A stretch of DNA of 41,974 nucleotides from Octopus bimaculoides. Taxonomy: Eukaryota. A program made the position numbers and the translations under genes. The stretch is from positions 52,973,395-53,015,368 of the forward strand of contig NC_068990.1 of NCBI RefSeq assembly GCF_001194135.2, in the 5' to 3' direction. The notes beneath the pieces were generated by a model, which had not been told where the DNA came from, did no database searches, and worked only from the letters and a program-made list of their open reading frames with translations. Every line of letters begins with the position of its first letter. Position 1 is the stretch's first letter. Shown piece by piece: positions 2,196-41,974 of the stretch.

Positions 2196-2390
2196 ATCAT
2201 CATCATCATTATCATCATCGTTAAACGTCCGTTTTCCATGCTGGCATGAGTTGGACAGATTGACTGGGGACTGGCAAGCCAGGAAGCTGTACTGAGCTCC
2301 AATCTGATCTGGCAATGTTTCTACAGCTAGATGCCCTTCCTAATGCCAACCACTCCGAGAGTGTAGTGGGTACTTTCTACATGCTACTGT
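2196..2390 (-). mobile_element. RTE 3' end or RTE-tailed SINE, diverged copy
   Basis: An (ATC)n tail plus CGTCCGTTTTCCATGC..GATGCCCTTCCTAATGCCAACCACTC, homologous to 7995-8179 and 41619-41806. Confidence 0.85.
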
Positions 2391-6736: not shown

Positions 6737-6861
6737 GTTATAATTATTACAATGTTGGATTATTAATAACGCCCACTTTGGTATGCAGTATACTTAGTAA
6801 AACCAGTAAAGACATGACTATCTCTTACCGTGTACTCTGGTACTTCACATATTTTTCTTTA
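6737..6861 (-). repeat. Partial 3' LTR of the outer Gypsy element, continuing at 8180-8194 after the RTE insertion
   Basis: AATGTTGGATTATTAATAACGCCCACTT.GGTAT.CAGTATACTTAGTAAAACCAGTA..GACATGACTATCTCT matches 12527-12601. Confidence 0.9.
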
Positions 6862-8179
6862 TCCAGTCCTCCAGGCAATCACAGAGGAGTTCAAGACAGG
6901 TTGCCCCTGGGAGCTCCTCTATGCTGATGACCTTGCCCTAATTGCGGAGTCACTATCAGAACTAGAGGAGAAGTTTCAGGTGTGGAAGCAAGGTCTAGAA
7001 TTGAAGGGCCTTAGAGTCAACCTAGCTAAAACCAAAATCCTAATAAGTAGGAAGGTAGATAAAACACAAACCCCTTCAGGTAGATGGCCCTGCTCAGTAT
7101 GTAGAAAAGGAGTAGGTAGTAACTCTATAAGATGTACCCGGTGCAAGCTATGGACACATAAGAGGTGCAGCAACATCAAAGGCAGGTTAACTAGCAAGTT
7201 NNNNNNNNNNNNNNNNNNNNNNNNNNNNNNNNNNNNNNNNNNNNNNNNNNNNNNNNNNNNNNNNNNNNNNNNNNNNNNNNNNNNNNNNNNNNNNNNNNNN
7301 NNNNNNNNNNNNNNNNNNNNNNNNNNNNNNNNNNNNNNNNNNNNNNNNNNNNNNNNNNNNNNNNNNNNNNNNNNNNNNNNNNNNNNNNNNNNNNNNNNNN
7401 NNNNNNNNNNNNNNNNNNNNNNNNNNNNNNNNNNNNNNNNNNNNNNNNNNNNNNNNNNNNNNNNNNNNNNNNNNNNNNNNNNNNNNNNNNNNNNNNNNNN
7501 NNNNNNNNNNNNNNNNNNNNNNNNNNNNNNNNNNNNNNNNNNNNNNNNNNNNNNNNNNNNNNNNNNNNNNNNNNNNNNNNNNNNNNNNNNNNNNNNNNNN
7601 NNNNNNNNNNNNNNNNNNNNNNNNNNNNNNNNNNNNNNNNNNNNNNNNNNNNNNNNNNNNNNNNNNNNNNNNNNNNNNNNNNNNNNNNNNNNNNNNNNNN
7701 NNNNNNNNNNNNNNNNNNNNNNNNNNNNNNNNNNNNNNNNNNNNNNNNNNNNNNNNNNNNNNNNNNNNNNNNNNNNNNNNNNNNNNNNNNNNNNNNNNNN
7801 NNNNNNNNNNNNNNNNNNNNNNNNNNNNNNNNNNNNNNNNNNNNNNNNNNNNNNNNNNNNNNNNNNNNNNNNNNNNNNNNNNNNNNNNNNNNNNNNNNNN
7901 NNNNNNNNNNNNNNNNNNNNNNNNNNNNNNNNNNNNNNNNNNNNNNNNNNNNNNNNNNNNNNNNNNNNNNNNNNNNNNNNNNNNNNNNNNNNNNGACACG
8001 TAAAAGCACCCACTACACTCTCTGAGTGGTTGGCGTTAGGAAGGGCATCCAGCTGTAGAAACTCTGCCAAATCAGACTGGAGCCTGGTGTTGCCATCCGG
8101 TTTCACCAGTCCTCAGTCAAATCGTCCAACCCATGCTAGCATGGAAAGCGGACGTTAAACGATGATGATGATGATGATG
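6862..8179 (+). mobile_element. 5'-truncated young RTE LINE inserted in the LTR (RT C-terminal half, PHD-like finger, 3' UTR, (GAT)n tail); gap at 7201-7994
   Basis: VLQAITEEFKTGCPWELLYADDLALIAES (YADD at 6920-6931) and GLRVNLAKTK are present; the tail is AAACGATGATGATGATGATGATGA. Confidence 0.92.
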
Positions 8180-8194
8180 ATAGTGACTAGGTTA

Positions 8195-9650
8195 AGACAT
8201 ACCATCGGCATGTCCCAACTCTTTTGAAGGCAGATATTCCATTCCATAATTGTAGTTTAATAGAAGGGTACCCCACCATTGCAGTCTGTTTGCCTTATGT
8301 GTTGGGATTCCTTCTTGTATCTGTATATCATTATTAGAGGTCTATGGTCCATTTGCAACCAAAAACATCTGCTGTAAATGAACCCGTGGAACTTTTTCAT
8401 ACCAAATGTAATAGCTAATGCCCCTTTTTCAATCTGGCTATAGCTCTTTTCTGCCAGCAATAATGTCCTTGATGTGTGAGCTATGGCCTTTCTCCTGTCA
8501 TCGTTATCCTTGTGAAGGAGTATGACTCCTTTCCCATACTCGCTAGCATCTGTAGCTAATATTATCTCTAACTTTGGGTTGAAATGCATAAGATACAAGC
8601 CTGAAGTTATCACATCTTTGAACTTGTTAAAGGCTTTCTGGCATTTCTCTGTCCAAACCAATTTGGCATTTGTTTTTAGTAATTCATTAAGTGGCGCCTT
8701 TACCTTATGTATATTTGGAATTTATACTTGGAATGTATATTTGGAATTTACCAAGCCTAGGAATGCTCGTAGCATTGTCACAGTCATTGGGGGTGGCACG
8801 TTTCATATTGCTGTTGCCTTTGATGGGTCTGGTCTACATCCAGTTTCGTCGATTACTTGATCTAGGTATTTTATTTTTTCCATCAAAAATTTTTCTTTTG
8901 TCAATTTTAGTCTGTATTCACTTATTCTCTTGAATACTTTCTTTATGTGTTCGACTTGTTGCACCCGAGACTCGCACTTTATCAAAATGTCATCGAGGTA
9001 TGTGATGGTGACGATACATTCACTTAACATCACATCCATTATTTGTTAGAATATGGTGGGTGCCACTTTTACTCCGAATAGCAGTTGTTTGAACTTGTAC
9101 AATCCACGGTGCATGTTAATTGTTAGTAGATGTATGCAGTCTTCCTCTAACTGAATCTGAAAGTATGATGCTGAGAGGTCTAACTTTGAGAAGATTTTCC
9201 CTCTATTTAGTTTAGTAAATATTTCTTTTGGGCTTGGTAGTGGGTAATTGTGTGTGAGTAAACAGTCATTTAATCTGGTTGAGAAGTCTGTGCATACTCT
9301 CAGCTTTTTAAAAAATTTTTTTTTTTTAATATAGACTGCCGATGCTGCCCAGTCTGCATGGTTAATCTTTTCAATTATATTCAGGTTTTCCAACCTTTCT
9401 AGTTCTTTATTGGTCTGGTCTACTGCTGCAAATGGCACATTCCGTTTGGGACTGAAAATAGGTGTTGAATTTTCTTTGATAGCTATCCTTGCTTTTGTTT
9501 TTGTGAAACAGCCTAAACCTTCCAAACTTATATTTTTTGTCTCAGTTCATTGACCTCATTCGATCATTTGACTGCTCCATTTACGTTATTGTACAAAATG
9601 CTTATGGATGTATCCCTTAAATCAAATTTCTCCATACATTCGGTGCCAAA
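8195..9650 (-). pseudogene. Gypsy pol fragment: RT and RNase H, frameshifted, with no integrase
   Basis: RVCTDFSTRLNDCL, FSKLDLSASYFQI, LLFGVKVAPTIF, YLDDILI, LATDASEYG, SYSQIEKGALAI, ending GIPTH.ANRLQ..HADGMS at the LTR junction. Confidence 0.92.
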
Positions 9651-10866
9651 TAAATTCATGGATTTTTCTGACACATAAACATTCACTTTTTTGGTTCAGC
9701 CTTTGAATATTATATTACAAACGCATTCACCTGTGAAATATAATTTTCTTCCTGTAACACCATACGCTATTTTGTTTGGACTACATAATTTTGGTTTACC
9801 CATTTGTTTCTATGTTTTCTCATTTATGATTGTGATGTCACTTCCTGTGTGTAACTGCATTCTGATGCTAGTGGTTTCAATTTTCACATTCATGAATTTT
9901 CTGTTTGTTCTAATCACAACTTTTTCTGCTGGCAGACTATTTATTTTTTCTTGTTTGTTCCATTTTCCTATCATTCTAATTTTGCAGTGCGATTTTATAT
10001 GTCCTGTAAACCTGCAGCAATAACACTTTGCTTTTTTATGCAGACAGTCTTTTATCAGGTGCATACTACCACATGCCATACATGGATTTACATCCCAGTA
10101 TTTTTTCCATTTTTCCTGCAACACTTTTTTGCCTTCCGACTTTCTTGTACTAGTCTCATGTGAAAATACTCTTTCCATTAAATTTCTTCCGTGTCATGCC
10201 TTAATTTTAATATCATGTCACACTCTTCCAACAGTCACTGCAATGTCAAATACGGGTTCATTTCCAGTTTTGTTAGACTCTTCATTCAGATTTCTACATC
10301 TCTTTTATCTGTCAATCCTTGTGCAAAAATCAAACACTTGAAAGAATTTGGAGTAAGCATATCCAGCCTAAATCTCTTACATTCTTTGTTGACTTTGTGT
10401 AAATAACGGAATCTTCATCTTTGTTTAAACATACAATGTTTAAACATTTCCATCTAGTACTAAACAGTGAGCTCTTTTCACTAAACATTTTGCACAAAAT
10501 GTCAACTGTGTTGGTAAAATTTATGTTGGATGCTTTCTTTGGCAATATGAAGTTGCTATACTTCTCATGCTCTGCTGTCACTAGTTTTCTTAAAACTAGA
10601 TGCGTTTTCATTTCGTCCGTCCAATCCTGACATTCTTTTTCACAAATTTGTTGAAATTTTCGAAAGTAAGCCTCAAAGGTTACTCCTTCTTCGAGGTCAT
10701 ATTTGAATTCACTTATGGAATTTGCTACATGGTTAAGTAAAAATGTATTCTCTGGTCTGGTTATCAACTTTAATAGTTGTAACATTTGCTGCTGCAATCC
10801 TTGTTGTTCTCGTTTCTTGAGTTGTTGCTTTTGCAACTCAACTACCCCGGCTAATAAGTCTTCCAT
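9651..10866 (-). pseudogene. gag and protease of the inner (nested) Gypsy element
   Basis: FKYDLEEGVTFEAYF..EKSSLFSTRWKCLN; zinc knuckles CMACGSMHLIKDC and CYCCRFTGHIKSHC; protease MQLHTGSDITII with the catalytic D changed to H. Confidence 0.88.
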
Positions 10867-14134: not shown

Positions 14135-15389
14135 CAGGGGTTGGACAAAATAATGGAAACACTTAGCATCATAGCATCATAATTTTGAAATATCTATATA
14201 AAACCGTCAAAAGCTTGTTTATTTTTATGTTTTTTGATTTATTATTAGTGTTGCTTAATATGTTTTGCTAAAATTGCTGTTTCTTTTCATATATCATCAG
14301 AAAAAGGTCATTAAAATTAAAGATCTATCAGACTTTCAAAGAGGTCAAATTGTTGGTGCTCGTATGGCGGGCGCTAGCGTAATGAAAACAGCAGAAATGT
14401 TTGGTGTATCAAGAAGTACTGTCTTGAAAGTAATGACAGCCTTTAAGAAAGAGAGAAAAACCTCCTCGTCGAAACAAAACTCCGGAAGAAAACTTTCAGA
14501 TAGGGACTGTCGGACTCTTTTGCGAATTGTTAGAAAGGATCACAAAAGTACAGCTCCCAAAATTACTGCAGAGCTTAATGATTACCTTGAGAATCCAGTT
14601 TTCACAAAAACTGTTCACCGTGGGCTGCACAAAGCTGGATTTCACGGGAGGGCTGCAATCAGAAAACCACTACTTTCAAAAACAAACGTTACAAAGTGTT
14701 TAGAATGGAGTAAAAACCCACAGAATTGGTCCCTAGAGCCGTGGAAGAATGTTATTTTCTTGAATGAGTTATCCTTTACCTTATTTCCGACCACCGGGCG
14801 AGTATACGTGTGGAGACAGCCAAAAGAAGCATTTGACCCAGACTGCCTTCTTCCAACTGTTAAACATGGAGGAGGATCTGTGATGATCTGGGGGGGGGGG
14901 GCTATATCTTGGAAATCCACTGATGGTCTCCCTTCATGGCAGAATTAATAGTCAAGACTATTAAAGCATTTTTTTCTGATCAAACTCATCCTATGGTTGA
15001 GGAACTCTTTCCGAAGGAAAACAATCTTTCAAGATGGTAATGCACCAATTCACACAGCTAAGGTTGTTACTGAATGGCACGGGGAACATTCTAGTGAAGT
15101 TGAACATGTTATTTGGCCATCAGAGTCCCCAGATCTCAATATTATTGAACATTTATGGTGTATTTTAGAAAAACAAGTAGTCAATAATGTCCACCATCAT
15201 CACTACAAGAACTGGAGACAGTTTTAACTGAAGAATGGACAAAAATTCCTTTGGAAACAATTCAAACTTTGTATGAGTCCATACCTCATAGAATTCAAGG
15301 TGTAATTACTGCCAAAGGTGGTCCTACCCCATATTAAAATAAATTTGTTTCAAATTTTACGGTGTTTCCATTATTTTGTCCAACCCCTG
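14135..15389 (+). mobile_element. Tc1-like DNA transposon, 1255 bp, DD37E spacing, defective
   Basis: Perfect 28-bp TIRs CAGGGGTTGGACAAAATAATGGAAACAC with TA on both sides. The transposase (about 14305-15337) has an HTH region, KHGGGSVMIWG, FQDGNAPIH and SPDLNIIEHLW. The first D is changed to N and there is a frameshift at the G-run near 14890. Confidence 0.95.
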
Positions 15390-18320: not shown

Positions 18321-19269
18321 TCTCCTCCTCCTCCTCCTCCTCCTCCTCCATTAATGTCCTACATACCATGTCTACCCTTCTGATGATCACATGACTCACT
18401 ACTCCCCCTCCATCTTTCTCCCTTCACCACAGCAATGTTACTGGTTCCAAACACATGTAGCACAACCACATCACACAAGACACATACATCATTTATGAAG
18501 AGAAACTATAAAACATGCTACAAAAATGATTTAACAAAATAAATTAAAACATAAAACTATGATAGATAGTTCAAGAAAACAAAGCCACAAGCCTAGCAGC
18601 CATAGTGTTGATGGTGATGGTCATGCCTGTTCTGAAATATATCTTTTATTTGTGGAACATGTCTTTCTTCTTTTACACAGTCCTCTGTTGGAAGTCCATA
18701 AAACTGTATCTTGTCATTCACCTCTACCTAAGTTTCAAATACTTCTTAGAAATAATCCAACTTTGAGGATTTATATATTCTTGTTCTTCAACACTAATGT
18801 GTATAACTTAAGAAGTTGAATATGAAAACACTTGTATTTAGCCATATTTTATTATTTAAATAACTTATATATAAATATTGGGTGGTTACTGACCTCTAGA
18901 ATGAAATAACATATTCTCTTGTCATGTTTGACTCGTGTAAAAACTTAGCTCAGTTTTGTTAGTCTGTGACTGACTGAAACCAACAGAAATTAACTGTAAA
19001 CTATGGCAAATTCTAAGCGATAAAAGGTTTCTTGAGTAGTCTTAGAATATGTGTGTGTGTGTGTTTCTTACATTGTTTTCATTGTCAAAAGTACTAATTG
19101 TATGCTTGTTAAGAGAAATAGCATTTTAAAGTAATAAAATTCTTGACCAAATTAAATGTGATTAAGTTCATTGAAAGGACCAGTGCTATATTTTGAGAAT
19201 TGCAAGTGTGGAAGCAAAACTTGAAATCAAAGGATCTTAAGTTAGTGAAGATGAAGCTTCTAGTACACT

Positions 19270-19965
19270 AGAAATCAGTCAGGATCCTATCCCCATCTTA
19301 GGTAGTTGGTCCTGCTCAATATGTAGGAAAGGTGTTGGCAGGTATTCCATATGGTGTATTCAGAGCAAGCTATGGACACTCAAGAGGTGTGGTGGAATCA
19401 CAGGAAGGTTAATGGAGAAAGTAGTTTTTGTATGTGAAGATGGTCAAGGGTCATAAAATCCAAGGTTACAAGGTGATCTAATTAGCAGTAGCGGGGGATG
19501 TTCTGAAAGTGTAACCTCTAGAATAAGAATAGGATGGAAAGAGTTGAGAGAACTATTACCTCTGTTGGCAAAAAGATCTACAGCAATACAACATGGTTGT
19601 GAGACATGGGCTCTGAATTCAGATGTGTAGACTAGAGAGGAATGAAGCTAGTATGCTCTGCTGGATGTGCAATGTTAGTGTGCATGTACGACAAATTGCA
19701 AATTGTATTGAGAGAAAGGTGCATAAGAAGAATCAGATGTTCTGTGCAAATGTAGTGGTTTGATCATGTGATATGTATGGATGAGATAGTTCCATAAAGA
19801 AGTACTGATTGCTTTAAGTAGATGGAACTCTTGGGAGAGAGAGGCTCAAGGAAGACATGGGATGAAGTATTGAAGGCTGATCTCAAGAAGCCAAGCCTTA
19901 TGAAGGAGACTACAAAAGGCCAAGATGATTGGCGTTTTGCTATGCTCAAGAAGACTTGTCCATTA
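19270..19965 (+). mobile_element. Degenerate RTE LINE fragment (PHD-like finger plus post-RT domain)
   Basis: WSCSICRKGVGRYSIWC..KLWTLKRCGGITGRLMEKVVFVC, SRIRIGWKELRELLPLL and HGCETWAL, paralogous to 7084-7200. Confidence 0.85.
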
Positions 19966-20504
19966 CCATTACCACAAAAATGATTCCCTCAGCCCTTCCC
20001 TAACAGTCTCCCACCCCCAGAACTACTTCTGTTCCTCATCATCCCTGGCCATACTATACTATTTTAACCAATCACCTTTTTGTGCCTTCAGCCACTGCTG
20101 TCTCTCTCATCTACTATACTTTCTTATCTGCTAAACACTTTCTTATCTGCTATTATTCTCAATGCTCTCCTATAATGACCCACCTACTGTAGCCCCATGT
20201 GTACCCCTATATCTCCCTCTCCATAGCTCCTATACCATGCACATCATCTCACAACTTTCTGTTCTATTCTCTTTCCTGAGCAACTCCTACTTCTTCCACC
20301 TTACCCCTCTACATACTGGTATTTCCCATCATCTGCACCCCCACCCTAGTTCATCACTCACTACTTTTTATCTCCGCCTGTTTACTATCCTCACACACTC
20401 TTATGAAGGCATCCACTCTCTTTTCCCCTCCCATGACCCACACTACATATCCTCTCTTATTCTCACCTTCTTGATGTTTGAGAGTTTGCTCTAGCACCCC
20501 ATTA

Positions 20505-21071
20505 TTATGTACCTCTTATCTTCTTCAGCCATATATCTCCTCTATAGGGCTTTCCGATAAGTAGATTATCTCCCTTGGCTAGGTGGCGCTCTATGCAGAC
20601 AATTATACTTCCGCAGACTACCCACGCCATTTCACTTGCTGCATCATCTTTAATTTCATCAAAAAGACAATCAAAAGTCATGGAATCTGGTATTCCCGTG
20701 TAAAAGAGAAGCTTCTGATTATCATTTTTCACATCTTCATATGTAAGCACAGGTGCTTTTGCCTGTGTTTCACAATCCACCATCTTACTTTCCAAGGTCT
20801 GAATACTGCTATTTGTATAAATAGGTTTATTGACAAGATCACATTGTATTCCTATTCCCTTGGTACAAATTTCTTGTACAGTCTGCACTGACTTGTGTGT
20901 AAAAGCTGAGAATGATTCAGGATTAACTGGACCACAGTAATCATGAAACATTAAAGAATTGTTCAACATAGACATGGTAGGACTTACGAAGCAACCAAGC
21001 TGTTCTGTGACATTCATATCTTCGACTTCCCTGGTCTCAATAGCTTCTTGACATTCATTCACTTGTATATT
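20505..21071 (-). pseudogene. Transposase exon 2 (188 codons open; reads through the deletion junction and TIR to TAA at 20505-20507)
   Basis: The TTATTTGCAG acceptor at 21072 is in phase 0. LTYEDVKNDNQKLLFYTGIPDSMTFDCLF resembles the region preceding the HTH/DDE_Tnp_4 domain in Harbinger-type transposases. Confidence 0.75.
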
Positions 21072-21884
21072 CTGCAAATAAGTTAAATACATTTTTACGT
21101 GGGCATAGCTTACAGCAATCATTCACTGATTTGGCCATAAAGTCTATTAATCTATTATGTCTATTAATAATTAGAGGAATATTAGATTCAATGCTGTAAA
21201 TTTATTATTTAATCAAACAAAAAAATATATAAAGAAAAATATCACAGCCAGGCTTACTCGAAATTCCCACATTCATTCAGAACATTCACAACAATTTCAA
21301 TGTATTTATTCTTTGAATGCAAAATGCTTTTATTAAAAATACCTGTACATCAACACAACACTTAGTTTAAACTTTTGTGTTTAGCCCAAGGTAGACTACT
21401 TGAATTTTAATATGTTCTAATCTGTTAGTGAGGAGATAAATCATAGAGACATTTCACTCATCTACTAACTGCGTATATGATCATGCACTTACTGATGTTT
21501 TAAATACTTTGTTTGGGAAAATGGATGGCAAGGGGTGATCTGTCAATGGTCCATTAGAATTGACGAAATGCTGGGAGCAAATCTGGCTATTTGCAGTGTA
21601 AACAAAGTCTTTCCTCACAAGTCTCAATCTCTGAAGCCAAATACGACAAATAGCGATGTTTTCAGGGTATCTGTGAAGTGAAATAACTTTGCCGTCTACA
21701 TTCTTCCCTCTATAATTGCTTCATATACAACAGTATTTGCACGATTTCTTGGGAGACATATTAACCGGTCATACAGCCTGTGAGTCGTTAGTCTGCGGAA
21801 GTAAATGCGAGTCACTCAGCATGCGTGCATGTCATATGGGAGAGTTCCAATCAGGGGTGGATAATTACCTTATCGGAACCACCT
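20546..21884 (-). mobile_element. Internally deleted PIF/Harbinger-superfamily (ISL2EU-like) transposon, 1339 bp
   Basis: Imperfect TIRs AGGGCTTTCCGATAAGTAGATTATC and AGGTGGTTCCGATAAGGTAATTATC, with AT on both sides (20544-45, 21885-86; a TA/TATA reading is also possible). There is a perfect 15-bp subterminal inverted repeat. The element encodes a THAP domain and the FYTG-type N-terminal half of a transposase, with no DDE domain. Confidence 0.8.
21493..21759 (-). pseudogene. Transposase exon 1: THAP zinc-finger domain with an in-frame TGA at codon 13
   Basis: MSPKKSCKYCCI*SNYRGKNVDGKVISLHRYPENIAICRIWLQRLRLVRKDFVYTANSQICSQHFVNSNGPLTDHPLPSIFPNKVFKTS. It has the THAP signature (C..C, P, W, CxxHF, PSIF) and ends at a GTAAGT donor in phase 0. 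Confidence 0.85.
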
Positions 21885-22035
21885 ATAGCAAGATGCCTGT
21901 GCTTGTCCTTCTATCATGCTTTAGCCTTTCAACACCTGGCATAAATCCACCCACATCCACCTTTCCCTCCCAAATACTTCTTAGTAGTCGGAGCTTTTTC
22001 CTTTTCCCTTTTTCCTGCTCTTTTCTGTTTTGTAA

Positions 22036-22240
22036 GTCACATGGCAACATCACTAGTGCCAAAGACATGAAAAAGTACCCTGTACATTCTGTAATTTGAG
22101 TGGTGTAAGGAGGGGCATCCAGTTGTAGAAACCATGCCAAAGATGACATTGGAGTCTGACATAGCCCTGCATCTTGTCAGTTCCCTGTCAAACCATCTAG
22201 TCCATGCTAGCATGGAAAGCAGATATTAAATGATGATGAT
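22036..22240 (+). mobile_element. Old RTE 3' end or RTE-tailed SINE
   Basis: GGGCATCCAG.TGTAGAAAC..CCATGCTAGCATGGAAAGC.GA..TTAAATGATGATGA, as at 8041-8179. Confidence 0.8.
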
Positions 22241-22877: not shown

Positions 22878-23001
22878 GTAACGTGTAGGACTATAATTTC
22901 CTCTTATGTGTATGCGCTCACAATGAGCATCCTATAAAAAAGAAATATATAGATTCTTTTCCCCTCTTCATCATATATATATATATATATANNNNNNNNN
23001 N

Positions 23002-23849
23002 TGATGAATATACTGTCATGTAAATTATGCAAAAATGAAAATAAAACTGACATCTCATTTTAACAGTTATATTTACCAAAATTGTATAAAAATATTATTT
23101 ATTCTATAAAATCACCATTGGCTTTAACCATGGCCTCCAAACGACTTCGGAATCTCCTACAACTCTTCTGGACGGTCTCCTTGAATGCTGCCATAATTCT
23201 TGCCTTCAGTTCATCTTTGGTGTTACGAGAAGTTTTGTTGGTCTCTTGCACAACTGCACCCCACACATAATAATCAAGGGTGTTGCAGTGTGGGGAGTTA
23301 GGTGGCCAGGTGTTAGAGATGATGTGGTCGCAGAAATTGTCTGACAACTGTGACTCTGTTCTCCTGCTTGTGTGACATGGTGCAGAGTCCTGTTGCCAGA
23401 CATAGGGTCTTCCAGCAGCCACCCTTTTGACCCAGGGCAGCACTACCTCCTCCAGACACTTGATGTAGGCCTCTGTGTTGAGTCTGAGGCTTTGTGGGAA
23501 GATGAATGGAGGCATAATGTCGCCATCGCTAGTGATCACTCCAAACACCATGATGTTGACTGGATGTTTGATATTTATCACTCTTGGTCCATACCCTCAG
23601 ATTGCACTGTCCTGAGATAGACACCCAAACACTCTGAAATGTTTGTATTGGAGCTTCCAGTGTGAATGCCAAGCAGTACATGTCATTTCCAAATTTCTGG
23701 CAGAGTGAATTGTGTCATGGTGCTGTTTTTCTCACAGATGGTACCCAATTAACCCTACTATACTGCATTGTCGACAAAGCCAAAAACAAACAATACCCAT
23801 GCCTAAAATTAAAGATATAAAATGGCAACAATTTACCCATCGCACCCTG
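23002..23849 (-). mobile_element. Internally deleted mariner-like maT (D37D) element; the 3' end runs into the gap at 22992-23001
   Basis: The 5' end reads TA|CAGGGTGCGATGGGTAAATTG. An N-terminal fragment (MTQFTLPEIWK..) is fused to VWQQDSAPCH..WPPNSPHCNTLDYYVWG, with 37 residues between the last two D. Confidence 0.9.
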
Positions 23850-25200: not shown

Positions 25201-26898
25201 TAATTCGTTTTATTGGCCACAGGGGCTAATATCAATTAAAAACATATAAGGACAAAGACAGGACGAAGGTTACAAAAGGTTTTGTCCAAAAAGGTAGGAA
25301 AGTTCGTCTAAACAGAGGAAGAAAATGGAGAAAGATATAATAAATAAATAGATAAATAAATAAGTAGAACTCCCAAAGGNNNNNNNNNNNNNNNNNNNNN
25401 NNNNNNNNNNNNNNNNNNNNNNNNNNNNNNNNNNNNNNNNNNNNNNNNNNNNNNNNNNNNNNNNNNNNNNNNNNNNNNNNNNNNNNNNNNNNNNNNNNNN
25501 NNNNNNNNNNNNNNNNNNNNNNNNNNNNNNNNNNNNNNNNNNNNNNNNNNNNNNNNNNNNNNNNNNNNNNNNNNNNNNNNNNNNNNNNNNNNNNNNNNNN
25601 NNNNNNNNNNNNNNNNNNNNNNNNNNNNNNNNNNNNNNNNNNNNNNNNNNNNNNNNNNNNNNNNNNNNNNNNNNNNNNNNNNNNNNNNNNNNNNNNNNNN
25701 NNNNNNNNNNNNNNNNNNNNNNNNNNNNNNNNNNNNNNNNNNNNNNNNNNNNNNNNNNNNNNNNNNNNNNNNNNNNNNNNNNNNNNNNNNNNNNNNNNNN
25801 NNNNNNNNNNNNNNNNNNNNNNNNNNNNNNNNNNNNNNNNNNNNNNNNNNNNNNNNNNNNNNNNNNNNNNNNNNNNNNNNNNNNNNNNNNNNNNNNNNNN
25901 NNNNNNNNNNNNNNNNNNNNNNNNNNNNNNNNNNNNNNNNNNNNNNNNNNNNNNNNNNNNNNNNNNNNNNNNNNNNNNNNNNNNNNNNNNNNNNNNNNNN
26001 NNNNNNNNNNNNNNNNNNNNNNNNNNNNNNNNNNNNNNNNNNNNNNNNNNNNNNNNNNNNNNNNNNNNNNNNNNNNNNNNNNNNNNNNNNNNNNNNNNNN
26101 NNNNNNNNNNNNNNNNNNNNNNNNNNNNNNNNNNNNNNNNNNNNNNNNNNNNNNNNNNNNNNNNNNNNNNNNNNNNNNNNNNNNNNNNNNNNNNNNNNTG
26201 ACAGTAGCTGTTCCATTTAGACCCACAGGTCAGCAATGCTCGGGCACTGGATGAGTGCGTGCAGAATGGTTTCGTGGTCCTGAGCGCACCTCGGGCAGGC
26301 CCGGTTGACGGCACTTCCGTGTCGGTAGAGTTTATCTCGAACAGGTAGCGCACCTCGGTAGCACTGCCAGGCGAGGGACCTTTGGAAATTATCCATGGGC
26401 TCCGGCTCGAAAGTTCTCCTGAACAGACTGTTTAGCTGATTATCTTCGACGCCTAGAGTTTCCCCGAGAACGTCGTCGCACTTTTCTCCCACTAACCCTC
26501 TATAGAACGCTAGAGTGGAGCTACTACCGATCGCGCTGCCTGCCTGACTGAGGGCAGTGAGAGCTTGGCGGCACTCGAGGTGCCAAGCACCCTTTCTCTG
26601 TATACGTTTGATCCAGGACTGCAGCTCTGTTAAAGAAACGAGCTGCAGAAAATCATGTCTGACGAAAGGCGACCACACCTGTTCACCGTCCAGGAAACGC
26701 TTGAGNNNNNNNNNNGTGAGGTTGGCCACCCTGTTCGTCACCTCTTCCCAGTTTTTCTCCAACTGAAGGTCCGGACCGAACCAGACTCCGAGCAGTTTAA
26801 TGGTCCAGCACCCTACGACGCTGCTGGACGGCATGGACTTGCCCCTCCAGGTGCCTAGTTGCAAGCCTACTGACTTTTCCGCGTTAATTTTCGCACCT
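25165..26898 (-). mobile_element. L1/Tx1-clade LINE, 3' part (post-RT region, CCHC finger, 3' UTR, AATAAA, (ATT)n tail); the 5' part lies in a gap
   Basis: GAKINAEKS..IKLLGVWFG, LAWQCYRGALPVRDKL and CPRCAQDHETILHALIQC. AATAAA lies at 25209-25214 on minus, before the tail at 25165-25203. Confidence 0.88.
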
Positions 26899-27807
26899 NN
26901 NNNNNNNNNNNNNNNNNNNNNNNNNNNNNNNNNNNNNNNNNNNNNNNNNNNNNNNNNNNNNNNNNNNNNNNNNNNNNNNNNNNNNNNNNNNNNNNNNNNN
27001 NNNNNNNNNNNNNNNNNNNNNNNNNNNNNNNNNNNNNNNNNNNNNNNNNNNNNNNNNNNNNNNNNNNNNNNNNNNNNNNNNNNNNNNNNNNNNNNNNNNN
27101 NNNNNNNNNNNNNNNNNNNNNNNNNNNNNNNNNNNNNNNNNNNNNNNNNNNNNNNNNNNNNNNNNNNNNNNNNNNNNNNNNNNNNNNNNNNNNNNNNNNN
27201 NNNNNNNNNNNNNNNNNNNNNNNNNNNNNNNNNNNNNNNNNNNNNNNNNNNNNNNNNNNNNNNNNNNNNNNNNNNNNNNNNNNNNNNNNNNNNNNNNNNN
27301 NNNNNNNNNNNNNNNNNNNNNNNNNNNNNNNNNNNNNNNNNNNNNNNNNNNNNNNNNNNNNNNNNNNNNNNNNNNNNNNNNNNNNNNNNNNNNNNNNNNN
27401 NNNNNNNNNNNNNNNNNNNNNNNNNNNNNNNNNNNNNNNNNNNNNNNNNNNNNNNNNNNNNNNNNNNNNNNNNNNNNNNNNNNNNNNNNNNNNNNNNNNN
27501 NNNNNNNNNNNNNNNNNNNNNNNNNNNNNNNNNNNNNNNNNNNNNNNNNNNNNNNNNNNNNNNNNNNNNNNNNNNNNNNNNNNNNNNNNNNNNNNNNNNN
27601 NNNNNNNNNNNNNNNNNNNNNNNNNNNNNNNNNNNNNNNNNNNNNNNNNNNNNNNNNNNNNNNNNNNNNNNNNNNNNNNNNNNNNNNNNNNNNNNNNNNN
27701 NNNNNNNNNNNNNNNNNNNNNNNNNNNNNNNNNNNNNNNNNNNNNNNNNNNNNNNNNNNNNNNNNNNNNNNNNNNNNNNNNNNNNNNNNNNNNNNNNNNN
27801 NNNNNNN

Positions 27808-28598: not shown

Positions 28599-30411
28599 TT
28601 ATGACATATTTCTGTCATGAAACTGTTCAAAGCACCCTTTACACAAGGGCACTTTGCAAAAGGAACACATATACGAAGTCTCTATCTGATACCCTTTTGC
28701 AGTTTTTCTTTTTTGCAGTGAACACAGTCTGCAAACTTTTTTCCTTCTGTTTATCTTTTCGACTTTATGAAAGTCAATGTTTTCTCTGTTGACATCTATC
28801 TCAGTTAATTTTGCTTTCCTTCCAGTTCTGTGATGCGATGTCAACCCGAAATTTGAAGTGGTCGTAGTCCTTTGGTGGCGGAGGTACCTTGTGGCTTTTT
28901 ACATATACAATATATGAATTTACAATAGTTAAATTAACTAAAAACCACAAAATGTACCTCCACCATTTCTTCCTAGGTCAACCAACTGGGAAATATGCCC
29001 GCTATTGGTCAGATTTGTCAACCCCACCCATATATTTGCTATAAGAAATATTCACTAGGGGTTTCCCCTCAGCGCCAACACCAGGTTGTTCATTAGAAGA
29101 CAGAAATAAAATGTCCCCACTTTTTTAAATTTTGATTTCTTTTCACGGGGTATACCTTTATGGTTTCCCATCACAGTACTGCACATGTAAGTACTTACAT
29201 GGGCAAGATTTTCTGTTAAAGCCACTGAAGAAAAAAATGGTCAAAATAGAGGTGTCGGTAATTATCGTGAAATGGTTCAGTAAGAGACCATACAACATCA
29301 TGCAGTCTGTTTCCATTATATTTTTTACCTGTGTAAACATCGAAGTTTACACAATACCCAGTCTCTGATTCACAAACTTCCCATACCTTATTCCCCAATT
29401 TAATAGGTTTGGCAGGCATGTACTGCCGAAAATATACTCTGCCCTTACAGCCTATCATGGCTTCATCTACACTGAAATTTTTCCAGGTAGATACACAGTT
29501 TTATAATTATTAATGAGTAAATCAATTACAGGACATACTTTATACAGGGATTGTCGTTTGGGTTGTTTTTGCTGGAGGCATTAGCAGGATCATTTAAATG
29601 CAAATACTGAGATATTTTCGAATACCACGTCTTCGACATTATACTTGAGATATATGGATTGCCATACCTTATATCCGGACTCCAGTAGTTCCACAATCGA
29701 GGAAGTTGTTTCATACCAAACATAATATTTATTGTGAAAAATGCTCTCATTTCCACAGTATAAGTTGGCTGCCATAGTGGATCGTCTCTTCCACAAATAG
29801 AAATTAAATGTTGCACATATTTGTTTGTTTCTTCTGTCACATTTTCAAAAAAAAAAAAACTTTCTAGTAAAAATAAAAATAGATAGTCCAATGGTTGAGC
29901 ATCAGGAGGTAAATTGTGTTGTGGACCAGTGTTTTCTGTGAAATCAGGAATAGTGATTGGTGTTGTAATCTTTGACCATGTTGCCATATTTACGATATCA
30001 TTTTCATCACTTTCGTTCTCAAAATCTTCCTCATCTGACAAATAATCACTAATATAAATATCAGATTCATCCGAAGACAAAATATTCTTGTTTTCATTTA
30101 TATTTTCTATATCAAGAGTAAACCTTCAAAGTCGGAATCGCTATTTGCTGATGCCATTTCTTTAACAACTAAGGTACACACTTCTCTTCAAACATTGAAA
30201 AAAACCATGTGGTCTAAACAATTTCACAGTATTTTTACTTGAATAAAGGCGGGAAAGGCTTCATCTTAAAGCTACAAGAATTGAATAACGTGATTTGTTT
30301 ATTTTTTTTAGCGACTTTGTAGAGCAGTCGGATATGACCGGATATGACTGGCTTGAATAAATAAGGGGGAATTAATTTTGACCAGTTACGGCTGGTTTGA
30401 ACACTAAAGGG
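28599..30411 (-). mobile_element. piggyBac-like transposon relic (PGBD4-type transposase, disrupted); only the 5' terminus was found
   Basis: The terminus reads TTAA|CCCTTTAG on minus (TTAA at 30412-15). The protein has an acidic N-terminus, SVDEAM, RQYMPAKPIKLG, LYFDHFF, KYMGGVDKSDQ and a C-terminal cysteine-rich domain CRLC..CSFCKVPLCKGCFEQFH. Confidence 0.92.
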
Positions 30412-37091: not shown

Positions 37092-39300
37092 CAGAACAAC
37101 CTCGGTTCTTGAATGTCTCACATGTCAAACAAATCTGTTTTTGAACAGAAAATTTGAGATGAGAATGCCTTGGTTATTGAACAAAATTTCAGTTCTCAAA
37201 CAACATTGCTGAACTAAGCTGAACCGAATTAACCTGAACGGAATCATTTCTGTGTCAACTACTGTATTGTATACATTTCTGTGTTGTGCTGTGTTTTTCT
37301 TTTCCAATTTTATTGTACTGCGCCTTTTTTCTCTTCATTAGCCCTTAGTCGTGGCTCCAAAGAAAGCTAGCAGTGATACTGGCAAAGAAAAAAGAAATGT
37401 TGAGAGAAAAACAATTGAAGTGAAGAAAGAAATTATCACAAAACACAGAAATGATGTTTGAGTGTCAAATCTCACTGAGCAGTATGGTATGCCTAAACCG
37501 GCAATATCTACTATTCTAAAAAATAAAGAAGTGATAAAAGCAGCTGTTGCAAAAGGAGTGATTGTTATTAATAAACAAAGACCAAAGATACTTTTATAAA
37601 TGAGAAACAGTTAGCAGGTGACAATGTCTGTGAAGCATTTATTTATGAGAAAGCATTAGAAATTTATAATGATCTAGTAAAGACAACCCCGGGTACAAGT
37701 GCTGAAAGTGATACTTTTGAATTCAAAGCTAGTAGAGGCTGGTTTGAGAAATTTAAGAACACAAGTGACACAGTGTAATTAGGCATGGAGAGGTGGCAAG
37801 TTCAAACAAGGAAGTGGCTGAGAAATTTTTGATTGAGTTTAGTGACTTGATAAAGAAAGGAGGTTATCTTCCCCAACAGATGTTTAAAGGGGATGAAACA
37901 GGGTCATTTTCGAAACGAATGCCAAATAGGAACTATATTACTAAGAAGGAAAAAAAGCATTGCCAGGGCACAAGCCAATAAAAGATAGACTCACTCTTTT
38001 GCTATGCAGCAACGCAAGTGGCAATTTGAAGGTCAAGCCATTGCTTGTTTACCATTCTAATAATCCAAGGGTTTTCAAAAGAAAAAAATGTTATGAAGAG
38101 TAAATTGCCTGTTATGGTGGCAGGCTAATATGAAGGAGTGGATTCATGAAGTTTTTGCTCCGAGTGTTAAAAAATATCTGCAAGAAAAAAACATGCCATA
38201 AATGCCTTCTCGTGTTAGACAATGCTCCCACTCACCTTCTAGGTTTGGAGGATGACTTAGTTGAAAACTTTGATTTTATTCAGGTCAAATACCTGCCACC
38301 TAACACAACTCTAATACAACCAATGGATCAACAGGTCATTGCAAACTAAGAAACTTTATACAAAAGCCCTGTTTTGAAAGTGTTTTCAAGTCACTAATGA
38401 CACTCAGTTAATTCTCAGAGAATTTTGGAAAAATCATTTCAATATCCTGAATTGTGTTTATCTTATTGATAATGCATAGAACCAAGCGAGTTACAGAACC
38501 ATGAATTCAGCATGGAGGAAACTTTGGCCAGACTGTGTACCATAATGAGACTTTGAGGGGTTTGAGACAGCTACAAGTACTGTTGTTGTGAAGGAAAATG
38601 CTATTATTGATGATATTGTCTCTGTGGGAAAAACTACGGGCTTAGATGTTGACAGTGAAGATATTGGAAGACCACCGTACTGAGCTTACCACCGAAGAGC
38701 TCATACACCTCCAAAATGAACAGCAAAAAACTTTGGCTCAGGAAACATCTTCCGGGGAAAAGGAAGGAAAGGAGGATGTTGCAACTTCTTTAATCAAAGA
38801 AATTTGTGCTAAATGGGTTGATGTGCAAAGTTTTGTGGGAAAATATCACCCTGATACAGTGGTAGCAAATAGAGCAGTAAACCTTTTCAATGATAATGTC
38901 TTGTCTCATTTTAGAAAAATTTTACAATGCAGGCAAAAACAACTAACATTGGACAGGTTTTTACTAAAAGAAAAAAGAAACCCCCAGAGAAAGATTTACC
39001 TGAACCAAAGAGACAGTGAAGGGAAACCCACCACCTGAAGACAGTTACCAGAAGTTATTATGGAAGGGGATTCCCCTTCTAAGAAATAACACACTTTTGC
39101 GTGTTAGTTACAGTTTGAATAAACGTTTTTCTACTAAAATACTTAGTGTAAGTGTGTAAATAAGCATTCATCTGGTGCTTGGAAATGAGTTAATCTCTTT
39201 TACATAAATTTTAATGGGAAAAAATGATTCAGTTCTCGAACAATTCAGTTTTAGAACAGACTTTCAGAACAAATTATGGTTGAGAACCTAGGTTCCTCTG
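37092..39300 (+). mobile_element. Tigger/pogo-like DNA transposon, 2209 bp, defective
   Basis: Imperfect TIRs TA|CAGAACAACCTCGGTTCT and AGAACCTAGGTTCCTCTG|TA. The protein has a CENP-B-type HTH (RKTIEVKKEII..ISTILKNK), FKASRGWFEKF, GDETG, VLDNAPTH and QPMDQQVI, with many stops and frameshifts. Confidence 0.92.
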
Positions 39301-41618: not shown

Positions 41619-41974
41619 CATCATCATCATCATCATCGTTTAACGTCCGCTTTCCATGCTAGCATGGGTTGGACGATTTGACTGAGGACTGGTGAAACCG
41701 GATGGCAACACCAGGCTCCAGTCTGATTTGGCAGAGTTTCTACAGCTGGATGCCCTTCCTAACGCCAACCACTCAGAGAGTGTAGTGGGTGCTTTTACGT
41801 GTCACCCGCACGAAAACGGCCACACTCGAAATGGTGTCTTTTATGTGCCACCCGCACAAGCCAGTCCAGGGGCACTGGCAACGATCTCGCTCGAAAATCC
41901 TACAGGAGCCAGTCAGGCGGTACTGGCAACGGCCACGCTCAAAATGGTGCATCTCATGTGCCACCCGCACAAGA
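41619..41974 (-). mobile_element. Young RTE LINE 3' end, continuing past the right edge
   Basis: It has an (ATC)n tail, and 41622-41806 is the reverse complement of 7995-8179 with no mismatch that I could find. Confidence 0.93.

Follow-up and report, generated by a model that had tools for sequence, protein, structure and literature searches.

A probable non-autonomous deletion derivative of an ISL2EU-like THAP transposon in octopus, with a stop codon at a zinc ligand

THAP domains have been domesticated repeatedly. The domesticated genes (human THAP0-11, THAP9) contain a C2CH THAP domain of transposon origin; they are open, syntenic across species and have no terminal inverted repeats (TIRs). 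DNA transposons also give rise to ordinary deletion derivatives, such as Ds from Ac, internally deleted P elements and zebrafish P-like copies, in which the termini are kept, the catalytic region is lost, transposase is needed in trans and point lesions occur. The Drosophila KP element is an internal deletion derivative that keeps the N-terminal THAP domain, the first intron(s) and both ends. Small non-autonomous P elements of this kind can encode repressors, and the 207-aa KP protein, the product of an open 207-codon frame, has dimerising, DNA-binding repressor activity (PMC7776569). In the ISL2EU group the transposase combines DDE, HTH and THAP domains, the target-site duplication is 2 bp long and the TIRs usually start with GG (PMC4482050). 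The published ISL2EU duplication is AT within an A|AT|T target (PMC4482050).

The window analysed here, a stretch of 41,974 nt from Octopus bimaculoides, contains a non-autonomous element of 1347 bp on the minus strand (20542–21888, including its palindromic CTATAG ends; the GG...CC core covers 20547–21883). Our best explanation, to which we give a probability of about 0.8, is that it is an ordinary non-autonomous derivative of an ISL2EU-like THAP transposon, fairly young, which arose by internal deletion and was inactivated when a zinc-ligand codon became a stop. An earlier note on this DNA had named a dead non-autonomous copy of the ordinary kind as its fallback, and this reading fits best: the copy has a lesion of its own and an accidental tail, other copies of the family are decayed, and no SECIS element was found. 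There is no essential difference between this copy and the ordinary deletion derivatives of DNA transposons, which are its category. Alone it matters little, being one more broken non-autonomous DNA transposon. It does, however, document that a THAP-bearing, Harbinger-related family is present in molluscs, octopus among them, and that this family has a conserved first intron and a candidate site for transposase binding.

The reading frame of the element is split into two exons. Exon 1 (21493–21759, minus strand) has 89 codons from the ATG and encodes the THAP domain, with C10, a stop at position 13, C61, H64 and PSIFP. Its translation reads MSPKKSCKYCCI, stop, SNYRGK...PSIFPNKVFKTS, where the sole stop is the TGA at codon 13. 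It is followed by a phase-0 GT-AG intron of 421 nt (21072–21492, minus strand; gtaagt...tttgcag) and by exon 2 (20505–21071, minus strand), whose 188 codons are free of stops and frameshifts and end in a TAA at 20507–20505. The spliced frame thus has 277 codons, no frameshift and one in-frame stop. Exon 2 lies in a stop-free run of 205 codons, longer than the longest run in any of 30 shuffled versions of the window (mean 127, maximum 162).

When the spliced product was used as query in an exhaustive HMMER search, 214 proteins matched at E<=1e-3, 83 of them at E<=1e-10, and it is collinear with mollusc proteins (best E 1e-37). Several of these relatives cover both exons as one collinear stretch (for example query 4–234, 9–232 and 9–235), which shows that the splice is genuine and came from the parent element. 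Translation and collinear relatives are thus in agreement with the gene structure proposed earlier: 89 codons, a 421-nt phase-0 intron and 188 codons, with one stop and no frameshift. In the genomic copies L001, L002 and L004 the homology breaks exactly after the ...KTS codon and is followed by GT. The intron in the window is 82% identical to that of L002, a second family copy from the Logan run SRR11869394; thus, the intron belongs to the element.

The relatives also reveal the parent family. The homologous part of exon 2 (20631–21071, minus strand), a transposase linker with an HDY motif and the pattern ...LTYEDVK..FYTGIPD..TF..LFDEIKDDA, can be aligned collinearly with full-length mollusc transposases as far as DDA(ASE). 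In the long relatives, which are annotated proteins of Solemya, Argopecten, Haliotis, Biomphalaria, Elysia, Mercenaria and Ylistrum, the Pfam domain order is THAP, HTH_Tnp_4, DDE_Tnp_4. All three domains are present in P0004, P0011, P0023, P0045, P0056 and P0138, and all six can be aligned to the spliced product of the window. Closest in sequence is a THAP-domain protein of Octopus bimaculoides (UniRef A0A0L8FQ40, 84% identity over residues 22–89), and exon 1 is 66–68% identical to P0001 and P0005. Look-ups of P0007, P0016 and P0172 for a full-length genomic relative returned nothing on record.

By these domains, the parent family is a THAP plus HTH_Tnp_4 plus DDE_Tnp_4 transposon of the PHIS superfamily (PIF/Harbinger-ISL2EU-Spy), ISL2EU-like and a relative of Harbinger; the window copy has no DDE domain, and the class is assigned through its full-length relatives. 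As in ISL2EU, the family transposase combines a THAP domain, an HTH and a DDE_Tnp_4-type catalytic domain, there is an A/T dinucleotide at each end, the repeats open with GG if the ends are set there, and occurrence is in animals only. The second ISL2EU open reading frame (ORF), a YqaJ exonuclease, is absent from the 1.3-kb window copy. A P-element or THAP9 parentage is rejected, because the domains found in the relatives are HTH_Tnp_4 and DDE_Tnp_4, with no match to a P-element transposase domain. The KP and P-element frame in which the earlier note had placed the copy is therefore half right: the THAP-only, internal-deletion anatomy stands, the P-element parentage does not. The comparison with KP is an analogy and not a relationship, since the family is not a P element, and a THAP-only relic need not derive from one.

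Two of the relatives deserve mention. In Mya arenaria, P0003 (XP_052777993.1) has a weak B-box (23.7 bits, cut-off 24.1) and a long N-terminal region fused to the THAP-plus-linker half, and its transposase part ends inside the HTH. A full-length THAP-HTH-DDE protein (P0045/P0168) is >90% identical between Biomphalaria glabrata and B. pfeifferi. These proteins may represent domestication or recent activity elsewhere in the family.

The ends of the element were identified by an inverted-repeat search and by alignment of both ends. The 5' TIR, CTATAGGTGGTTCCGATAAGGTAATTATC (21860–21888, minus strand), is 29 nt long, imperfect and 79% complementary to the 3' TIR, CTATAGGGCTTTCCGATAAGTAGATTATC (20542–20570, plus strand). 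The 5' TIR is kept in L002 and is recognisable in L001 and L004. A 2-bp TA target-site duplication fits the flanks, the candidate being the TA at 21884–21885 (minus strand), which abuts the GG of the repeat, with its partner at 20545–20546. TA adjoins GG at all four ends compared (both window ends, L002 and L004), and TAGG is where homology with L002 and L004, both independent copies, sets in. Read one base shifted, an AT duplication fits three of the four, L004 being the exception; the palindromic CTATAG permits TA or AT. After the TA, the repeats read GGTGGTTCC and GGGCTTTCC in the window, GGGTATTC in L002 and GGGTTCTT in L004, i.e., they start with GG as is usual in ISL2EU. However, the flanks in the window are CTA-TA-GG and CC-TA-TAG, so that the duplication is TA or AT and the target TATA-like, unlike the published ISL2EU target. 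A Harbinger-type 3-bp TWA, an 8-bp P/hAT-type duplication and a NuwaII-type CTNAG target were also considered, and none fits the flanks. Both flanks are purine-rich (purine fractions 0.73 and 0.63, against 0.47–0.59 within the element), which is what one insertion site would give.

Inside each end lies a copy of the motif TACTTCCGCAGACTA, at 21789–21803 (minus strand) on the 5' side and, inverted relative to it, at 20606–20620 (plus strand) on the 3' side. The window contains exactly these two copies, and no others are found even with two mismatches; none of 100 shuffles gave two copies. Its 12-nt core, ACTTCCGCAGAC, is identical in the window (21791–21802 and 20607–20618), L001 (232–243) and L004 (526–537), i.e., at four element ends from three samples, while the nearby non-coding DNA has diverged. 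We suggest that ACTTCCGCAGAC is a candidate THAP/transposase binding site of the family, and TACTTCCGCAGACTA a putative binding site for the transposase through its THAP domain.

The missing part of the transposase is evident from the same alignments. In the relatives, the linker (...FYTGIPD..TF.ALFDEIKDDAE...) continues into ...GGRPR.LR.IDEFFMVLMRLRLGLL, which belongs to HTH_Tnp_4, and then into the DDE domain. In the window, homology ends at DDA(ASE) and is directly followed by the 3' subterminal region; the coding sequence for HTH_Tnp_4 and DDE_Tnp_4, and anything downstream of it, is missing. From this comparison we infer the breakpoint, with the junction at about 20621–20642 (minus strand). 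The frame then runs on through a tail of 42 codons (20505–20630, minus strand; MAWVVCGS...KKIRGT), which is MAWVVCGSIIVCIERHLAKGDNLLIGKPYRGDIWLKKIRGT followed by the stop. This tail arises by chance, as the frame stays open across the 3' end of the element and a further 37 nt of flanking DNA. It had been proposed that the DDE half is deleted, with a junction at about 20625–20640 and a frame that ends past the TIR; the relatives and the alignment of the ends, with its 37 nt of flank, bear this out.

The window also contains long N runs at 7201–7994, 25380–26198 and 26899–27807 and 10-nt runs at 22992 and 26706. The assembly is thus a gapped draft, and errors are possible both at single bases and in structure. 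It could therefore be argued that the "deletion" is an assembly artefact, in which the 5' and 3' parts of a full-length repeat were collapsed in a short-read draft, and the three long gaps (794–909 nt) and two 10-nt gaps in a repeat-rich window are in favour of this. However, there is neither a gap nor a repeat at the junction, the sequence is continuous across it and the two flanks are alike in being purine-rich, which makes a collapse very improbable.

Two word-indexed searches, one exhaustive search of representative proteins and two metagenome scans revealed no further copy that shares the junction or the tail, although these collections hardly sample the source genome. The word-indexed protein search gave one relative for the whole product and one for exon 2 plus tail; the latter query found no homologue of the tail, and the tail has no Pfam match. 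In the metagenomes, the scan with peptide patterns gave 600 pattern matches and no relative, and the scan with a 17-nt motif gave 21 matches, none containing a relative of the element. The two longest of the 17-nt matches are in unrelated high-GC coding DNA, which looks like a RhoGAP-type gene. Exact look-ups in public assemblies of the ORFs of exon 2 and of the flank, and of two short ORFs after the stop with alternative starts, found none on record.

The THAP domain itself is well preserved apart from the stop. With an X placed at the stop, exon 1 scores 29.6 bits against the Pfam THAP model (PF05485, cut-off 23.9); relative P0001 scores 42 bits. The family profile also matches the solved THAP2, THAP1 and THAP11 domains. 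Three of the four zinc ligands are intact, as are HR(Y/F)P, the W and PSIFP. The zinc site C-X2-4-C-X35-53-C-X2-H is thus incomplete: C10, C61 and H64 are kept, and the second Cys is replaced by the TGA (21721–21723, minus strand; KYCCI-stop-SNY). Position 13 and C61 are separated by 47 residues, which is inside the permitted range.

In the family alignment, 15 relatives extend over the stop column and 14 of them have Cys there, within a local motif YCC-I-C-SNY or YCC-VTG-C-SNY, and the Pfam THAP model in P0001 begins at the first Cys of CCIC. Both agree with the earlier placement of the TGA at the second THAP Cys. Aligned to the solved THAP1, the stop column would instead be the first Cys of THAP1. 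We judge this an edge artefact of the local alignment, because the second ligand would then be absent, and prefer the family alignment and the Pfam start. At codon 13 the other family copies have TGC (L001 and L004), TAC (L002 and L003) or CGC, coding for Arg (P0013); among the family copies compared, TGA occurs only in the window. Polarised with outgroups, the ancestral codon is TGC, and the stop is explained by a C>A change at 21721. The next in-frame Met after the stop is residue 107, past the THAP domain, so this allele cannot make a THAP-containing protein.

Could the TGA be recoded? A selenocysteine would give a Cys-like ligand, and the pairing of the TGA column with Cys in the relatives is like that of genuine Sec/Cys pairs. 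Cephalopod RNA is edited extensively, so that ADAR editing of UGA to UGG was also considered. However, A-to-I editing would produce Trp, as had been pointed out before, and Trp cannot bind zinc. For selenocysteine, a scan of the whole window gave no Rfam match at gathering score, and the Rfam matches up to E=10 in 18500–22200, on both strands, did not include a SECIS family. The SECIS is thus absent at both thresholds, and the TGA is not common to the other copies. Recoding is hardly credible, and as far as can be judged from the sequence it is already close to refuted.

The other copies of the family have decayed independently. L002 and L003 have Tyr (TAC) at codon 13, deletions of 36 and 25 nt and have lost the acceptor; L002 has Tyr at the third Cys too. 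L004 has a TAA two codons after the codon 13 site, plus a frameshift. The window copy is 78% identical to L002 in the terminus and 5' UTR, 78% in exon 1, 82% in the intron and 83% in exon 2, so the exons (78–83%) are no more similar than the intron. The pairwise dN/dS between the two is 0.91. This was a check suggested by the earlier note, and taken alone the value corresponds to the ratio of about 1 expected there for a dead copy; L002, however, is itself dead. A pairwise dN/dS of two transposon copies is uninformative on whether either serves the host.

The changes in exon 1 were therefore polarised with outgroups. With L001 as outgroup, the changes at codon positions 1/2/3 are 0/1/6 in the window lineage and 11/11/6 in the L002 lineage; with L004 they are 2/1/6 and 11/7/3, and where both outgroups agree, 0/1/5 and 8/6/2. 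Under equal rates, the binomial probability of at least six third-position changes out of seven (L001 outgroup) is ~0.007. In exon 2, the conserved positions (HDY, GxQC, TQ, PxL) have the family state in the window and are lost in L002. The third-position bias implies that the window copy separated recently from a coding-competent lineage and has since accumulated little damage. As selection acts on the source transposase, such a bias is expected for a young deletion derivative and cannot be credited to a host or repressor function.

A single stop is also unremarkable. A neutral simulation of the 236 retained codons gave one stop or none with probability 0.84 at 3%, 0.69 at 5% and 0.36 at 10% divergence; one stop in 236 codons is thus not remarkable under neutrality up to ~10% divergence. 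The absence of indels would suggest only a few per cent of neutral divergence. The frameshift-free frame together with the third-position bias would also fit selection until very recently.

In L002 (~1224–1320) and L003 (~953–1042) the homology to the window is lost abruptly after ...CTTATATATGAA (window ~20745). This break is common to two sequencing runs and represents a different truncation or a nested insertion.

The preserved frame is also what would be expected if the element were a KP-like repressor, a role raised in the earlier note. In this reading, a spliced THAP-only protein would act on the ACTTCCGCAGAC sites and damp transposition of its family, and the TGA would be a null allele of recent origin, a polymorphism or an error in base calling. 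In favour of it, the stop is the only damage to the THAP exon and the 277 codons are free of frameshifts, the likely binding site is conserved at both ends, and the changes in the window lineage are mainly at third positions; the KP protein itself provides the precedent. However, an origin from an active transposase gene would leave the same selection signal, the C-terminus results from chance translation into flanking DNA, and no dimerisation region comparable to that of KP has been demonstrated. The assembled allele stops at codon 13 without another Met before residue 107, and the protein searches and metagenome scans found no copies with the same junction or tail. The proposal is thus left without support, and we consider it unlikely. 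KP is a P element with an open frame and a dimerising product, while the window copy is of the PHIS superfamily, stops at codon 13 and has an accidental C-terminus. If the KP-like reading were true, this would be a second, independent deletion derivative turned repressor of its own family. In its full form, it would hold that TGC haplotypes make a spliced THAP-only protein which binds ACTTCCGCAGAC at each end and represses its own family, i.e., an independent KP-type repressor in a cephalopod PHIS/ISL2EU transposon; this is very unlikely.

It can also be asked whether the transposon has given rise to a nascent or domesticated host THAP gene, given the repeated domestication of THAP domains and a frame that is open but for one codon. 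In the domesticated genes TIRs are gone; here, both TIRs and the subterminal sites persist, the frame ends accidentally in the flank and the stop is at a zinc ligand. The protein collections searched contain neither an ortholog nor an annotated protein for the locus, and its surroundings are a field of transposon fragments. A nascent THAP gene, which had also been suggested before, is therefore not supported either and is extremely unlikely.

We suggest that the ordinary deletion derivative arose as follows. A full-length element would have suffered an internal deletion, most likely through abortive gap repair, by which the HTH and DDE catalytic parts were lost, while both termini, the promoter-proximal THAP exon, the conserved first intron of the family and the exon 2 linker were kept. 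Such a copy could move only with transposase supplied by a full-length relative, which presumably binds the conserved ACTTCCGCAGAC inside each end. Later, a C>A change would have turned the second zinc-ligand codon from TGC to TGA. The resulting allele would then encode a 12-residue peptide and no THAP protein, and would have no function of its own.

Other mobile-element fragments are found in the window at 6830–7180 (plus strand), 8257–9525 (minus), 10330–10866 (minus), 14265–14948 (plus) and 29526–30080 (minus). They include a reverse transcriptase with a PHD-like finger, an LTR-type RT and RNase H with a DUF7083 gag-like ORF; a Tc1-type transposase N-terminus and a piggyBac-type DDE_Tnp_1_7 fragment are also present. 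Judged by this content, the region is a transposon graveyard. A repeat of ~175 bp occurs in four copies that are 71–73% identical, at 22064–22240, 7995–8169, 41629–41803 (minus strand) and 2211–2376 (minus strand). One copy is ~180 bp from the 5' end of the element, and the repeat looks like a SINE or MITE. For two further ORFs, 23099–23581 (minus strand, 160 aa) and 38646–39038 (plus strand, 130 aa), Pfam gave no match at E<=0.01; the former, judged by eye, seems to resemble the C-terminal part of a mariner-type transposase.
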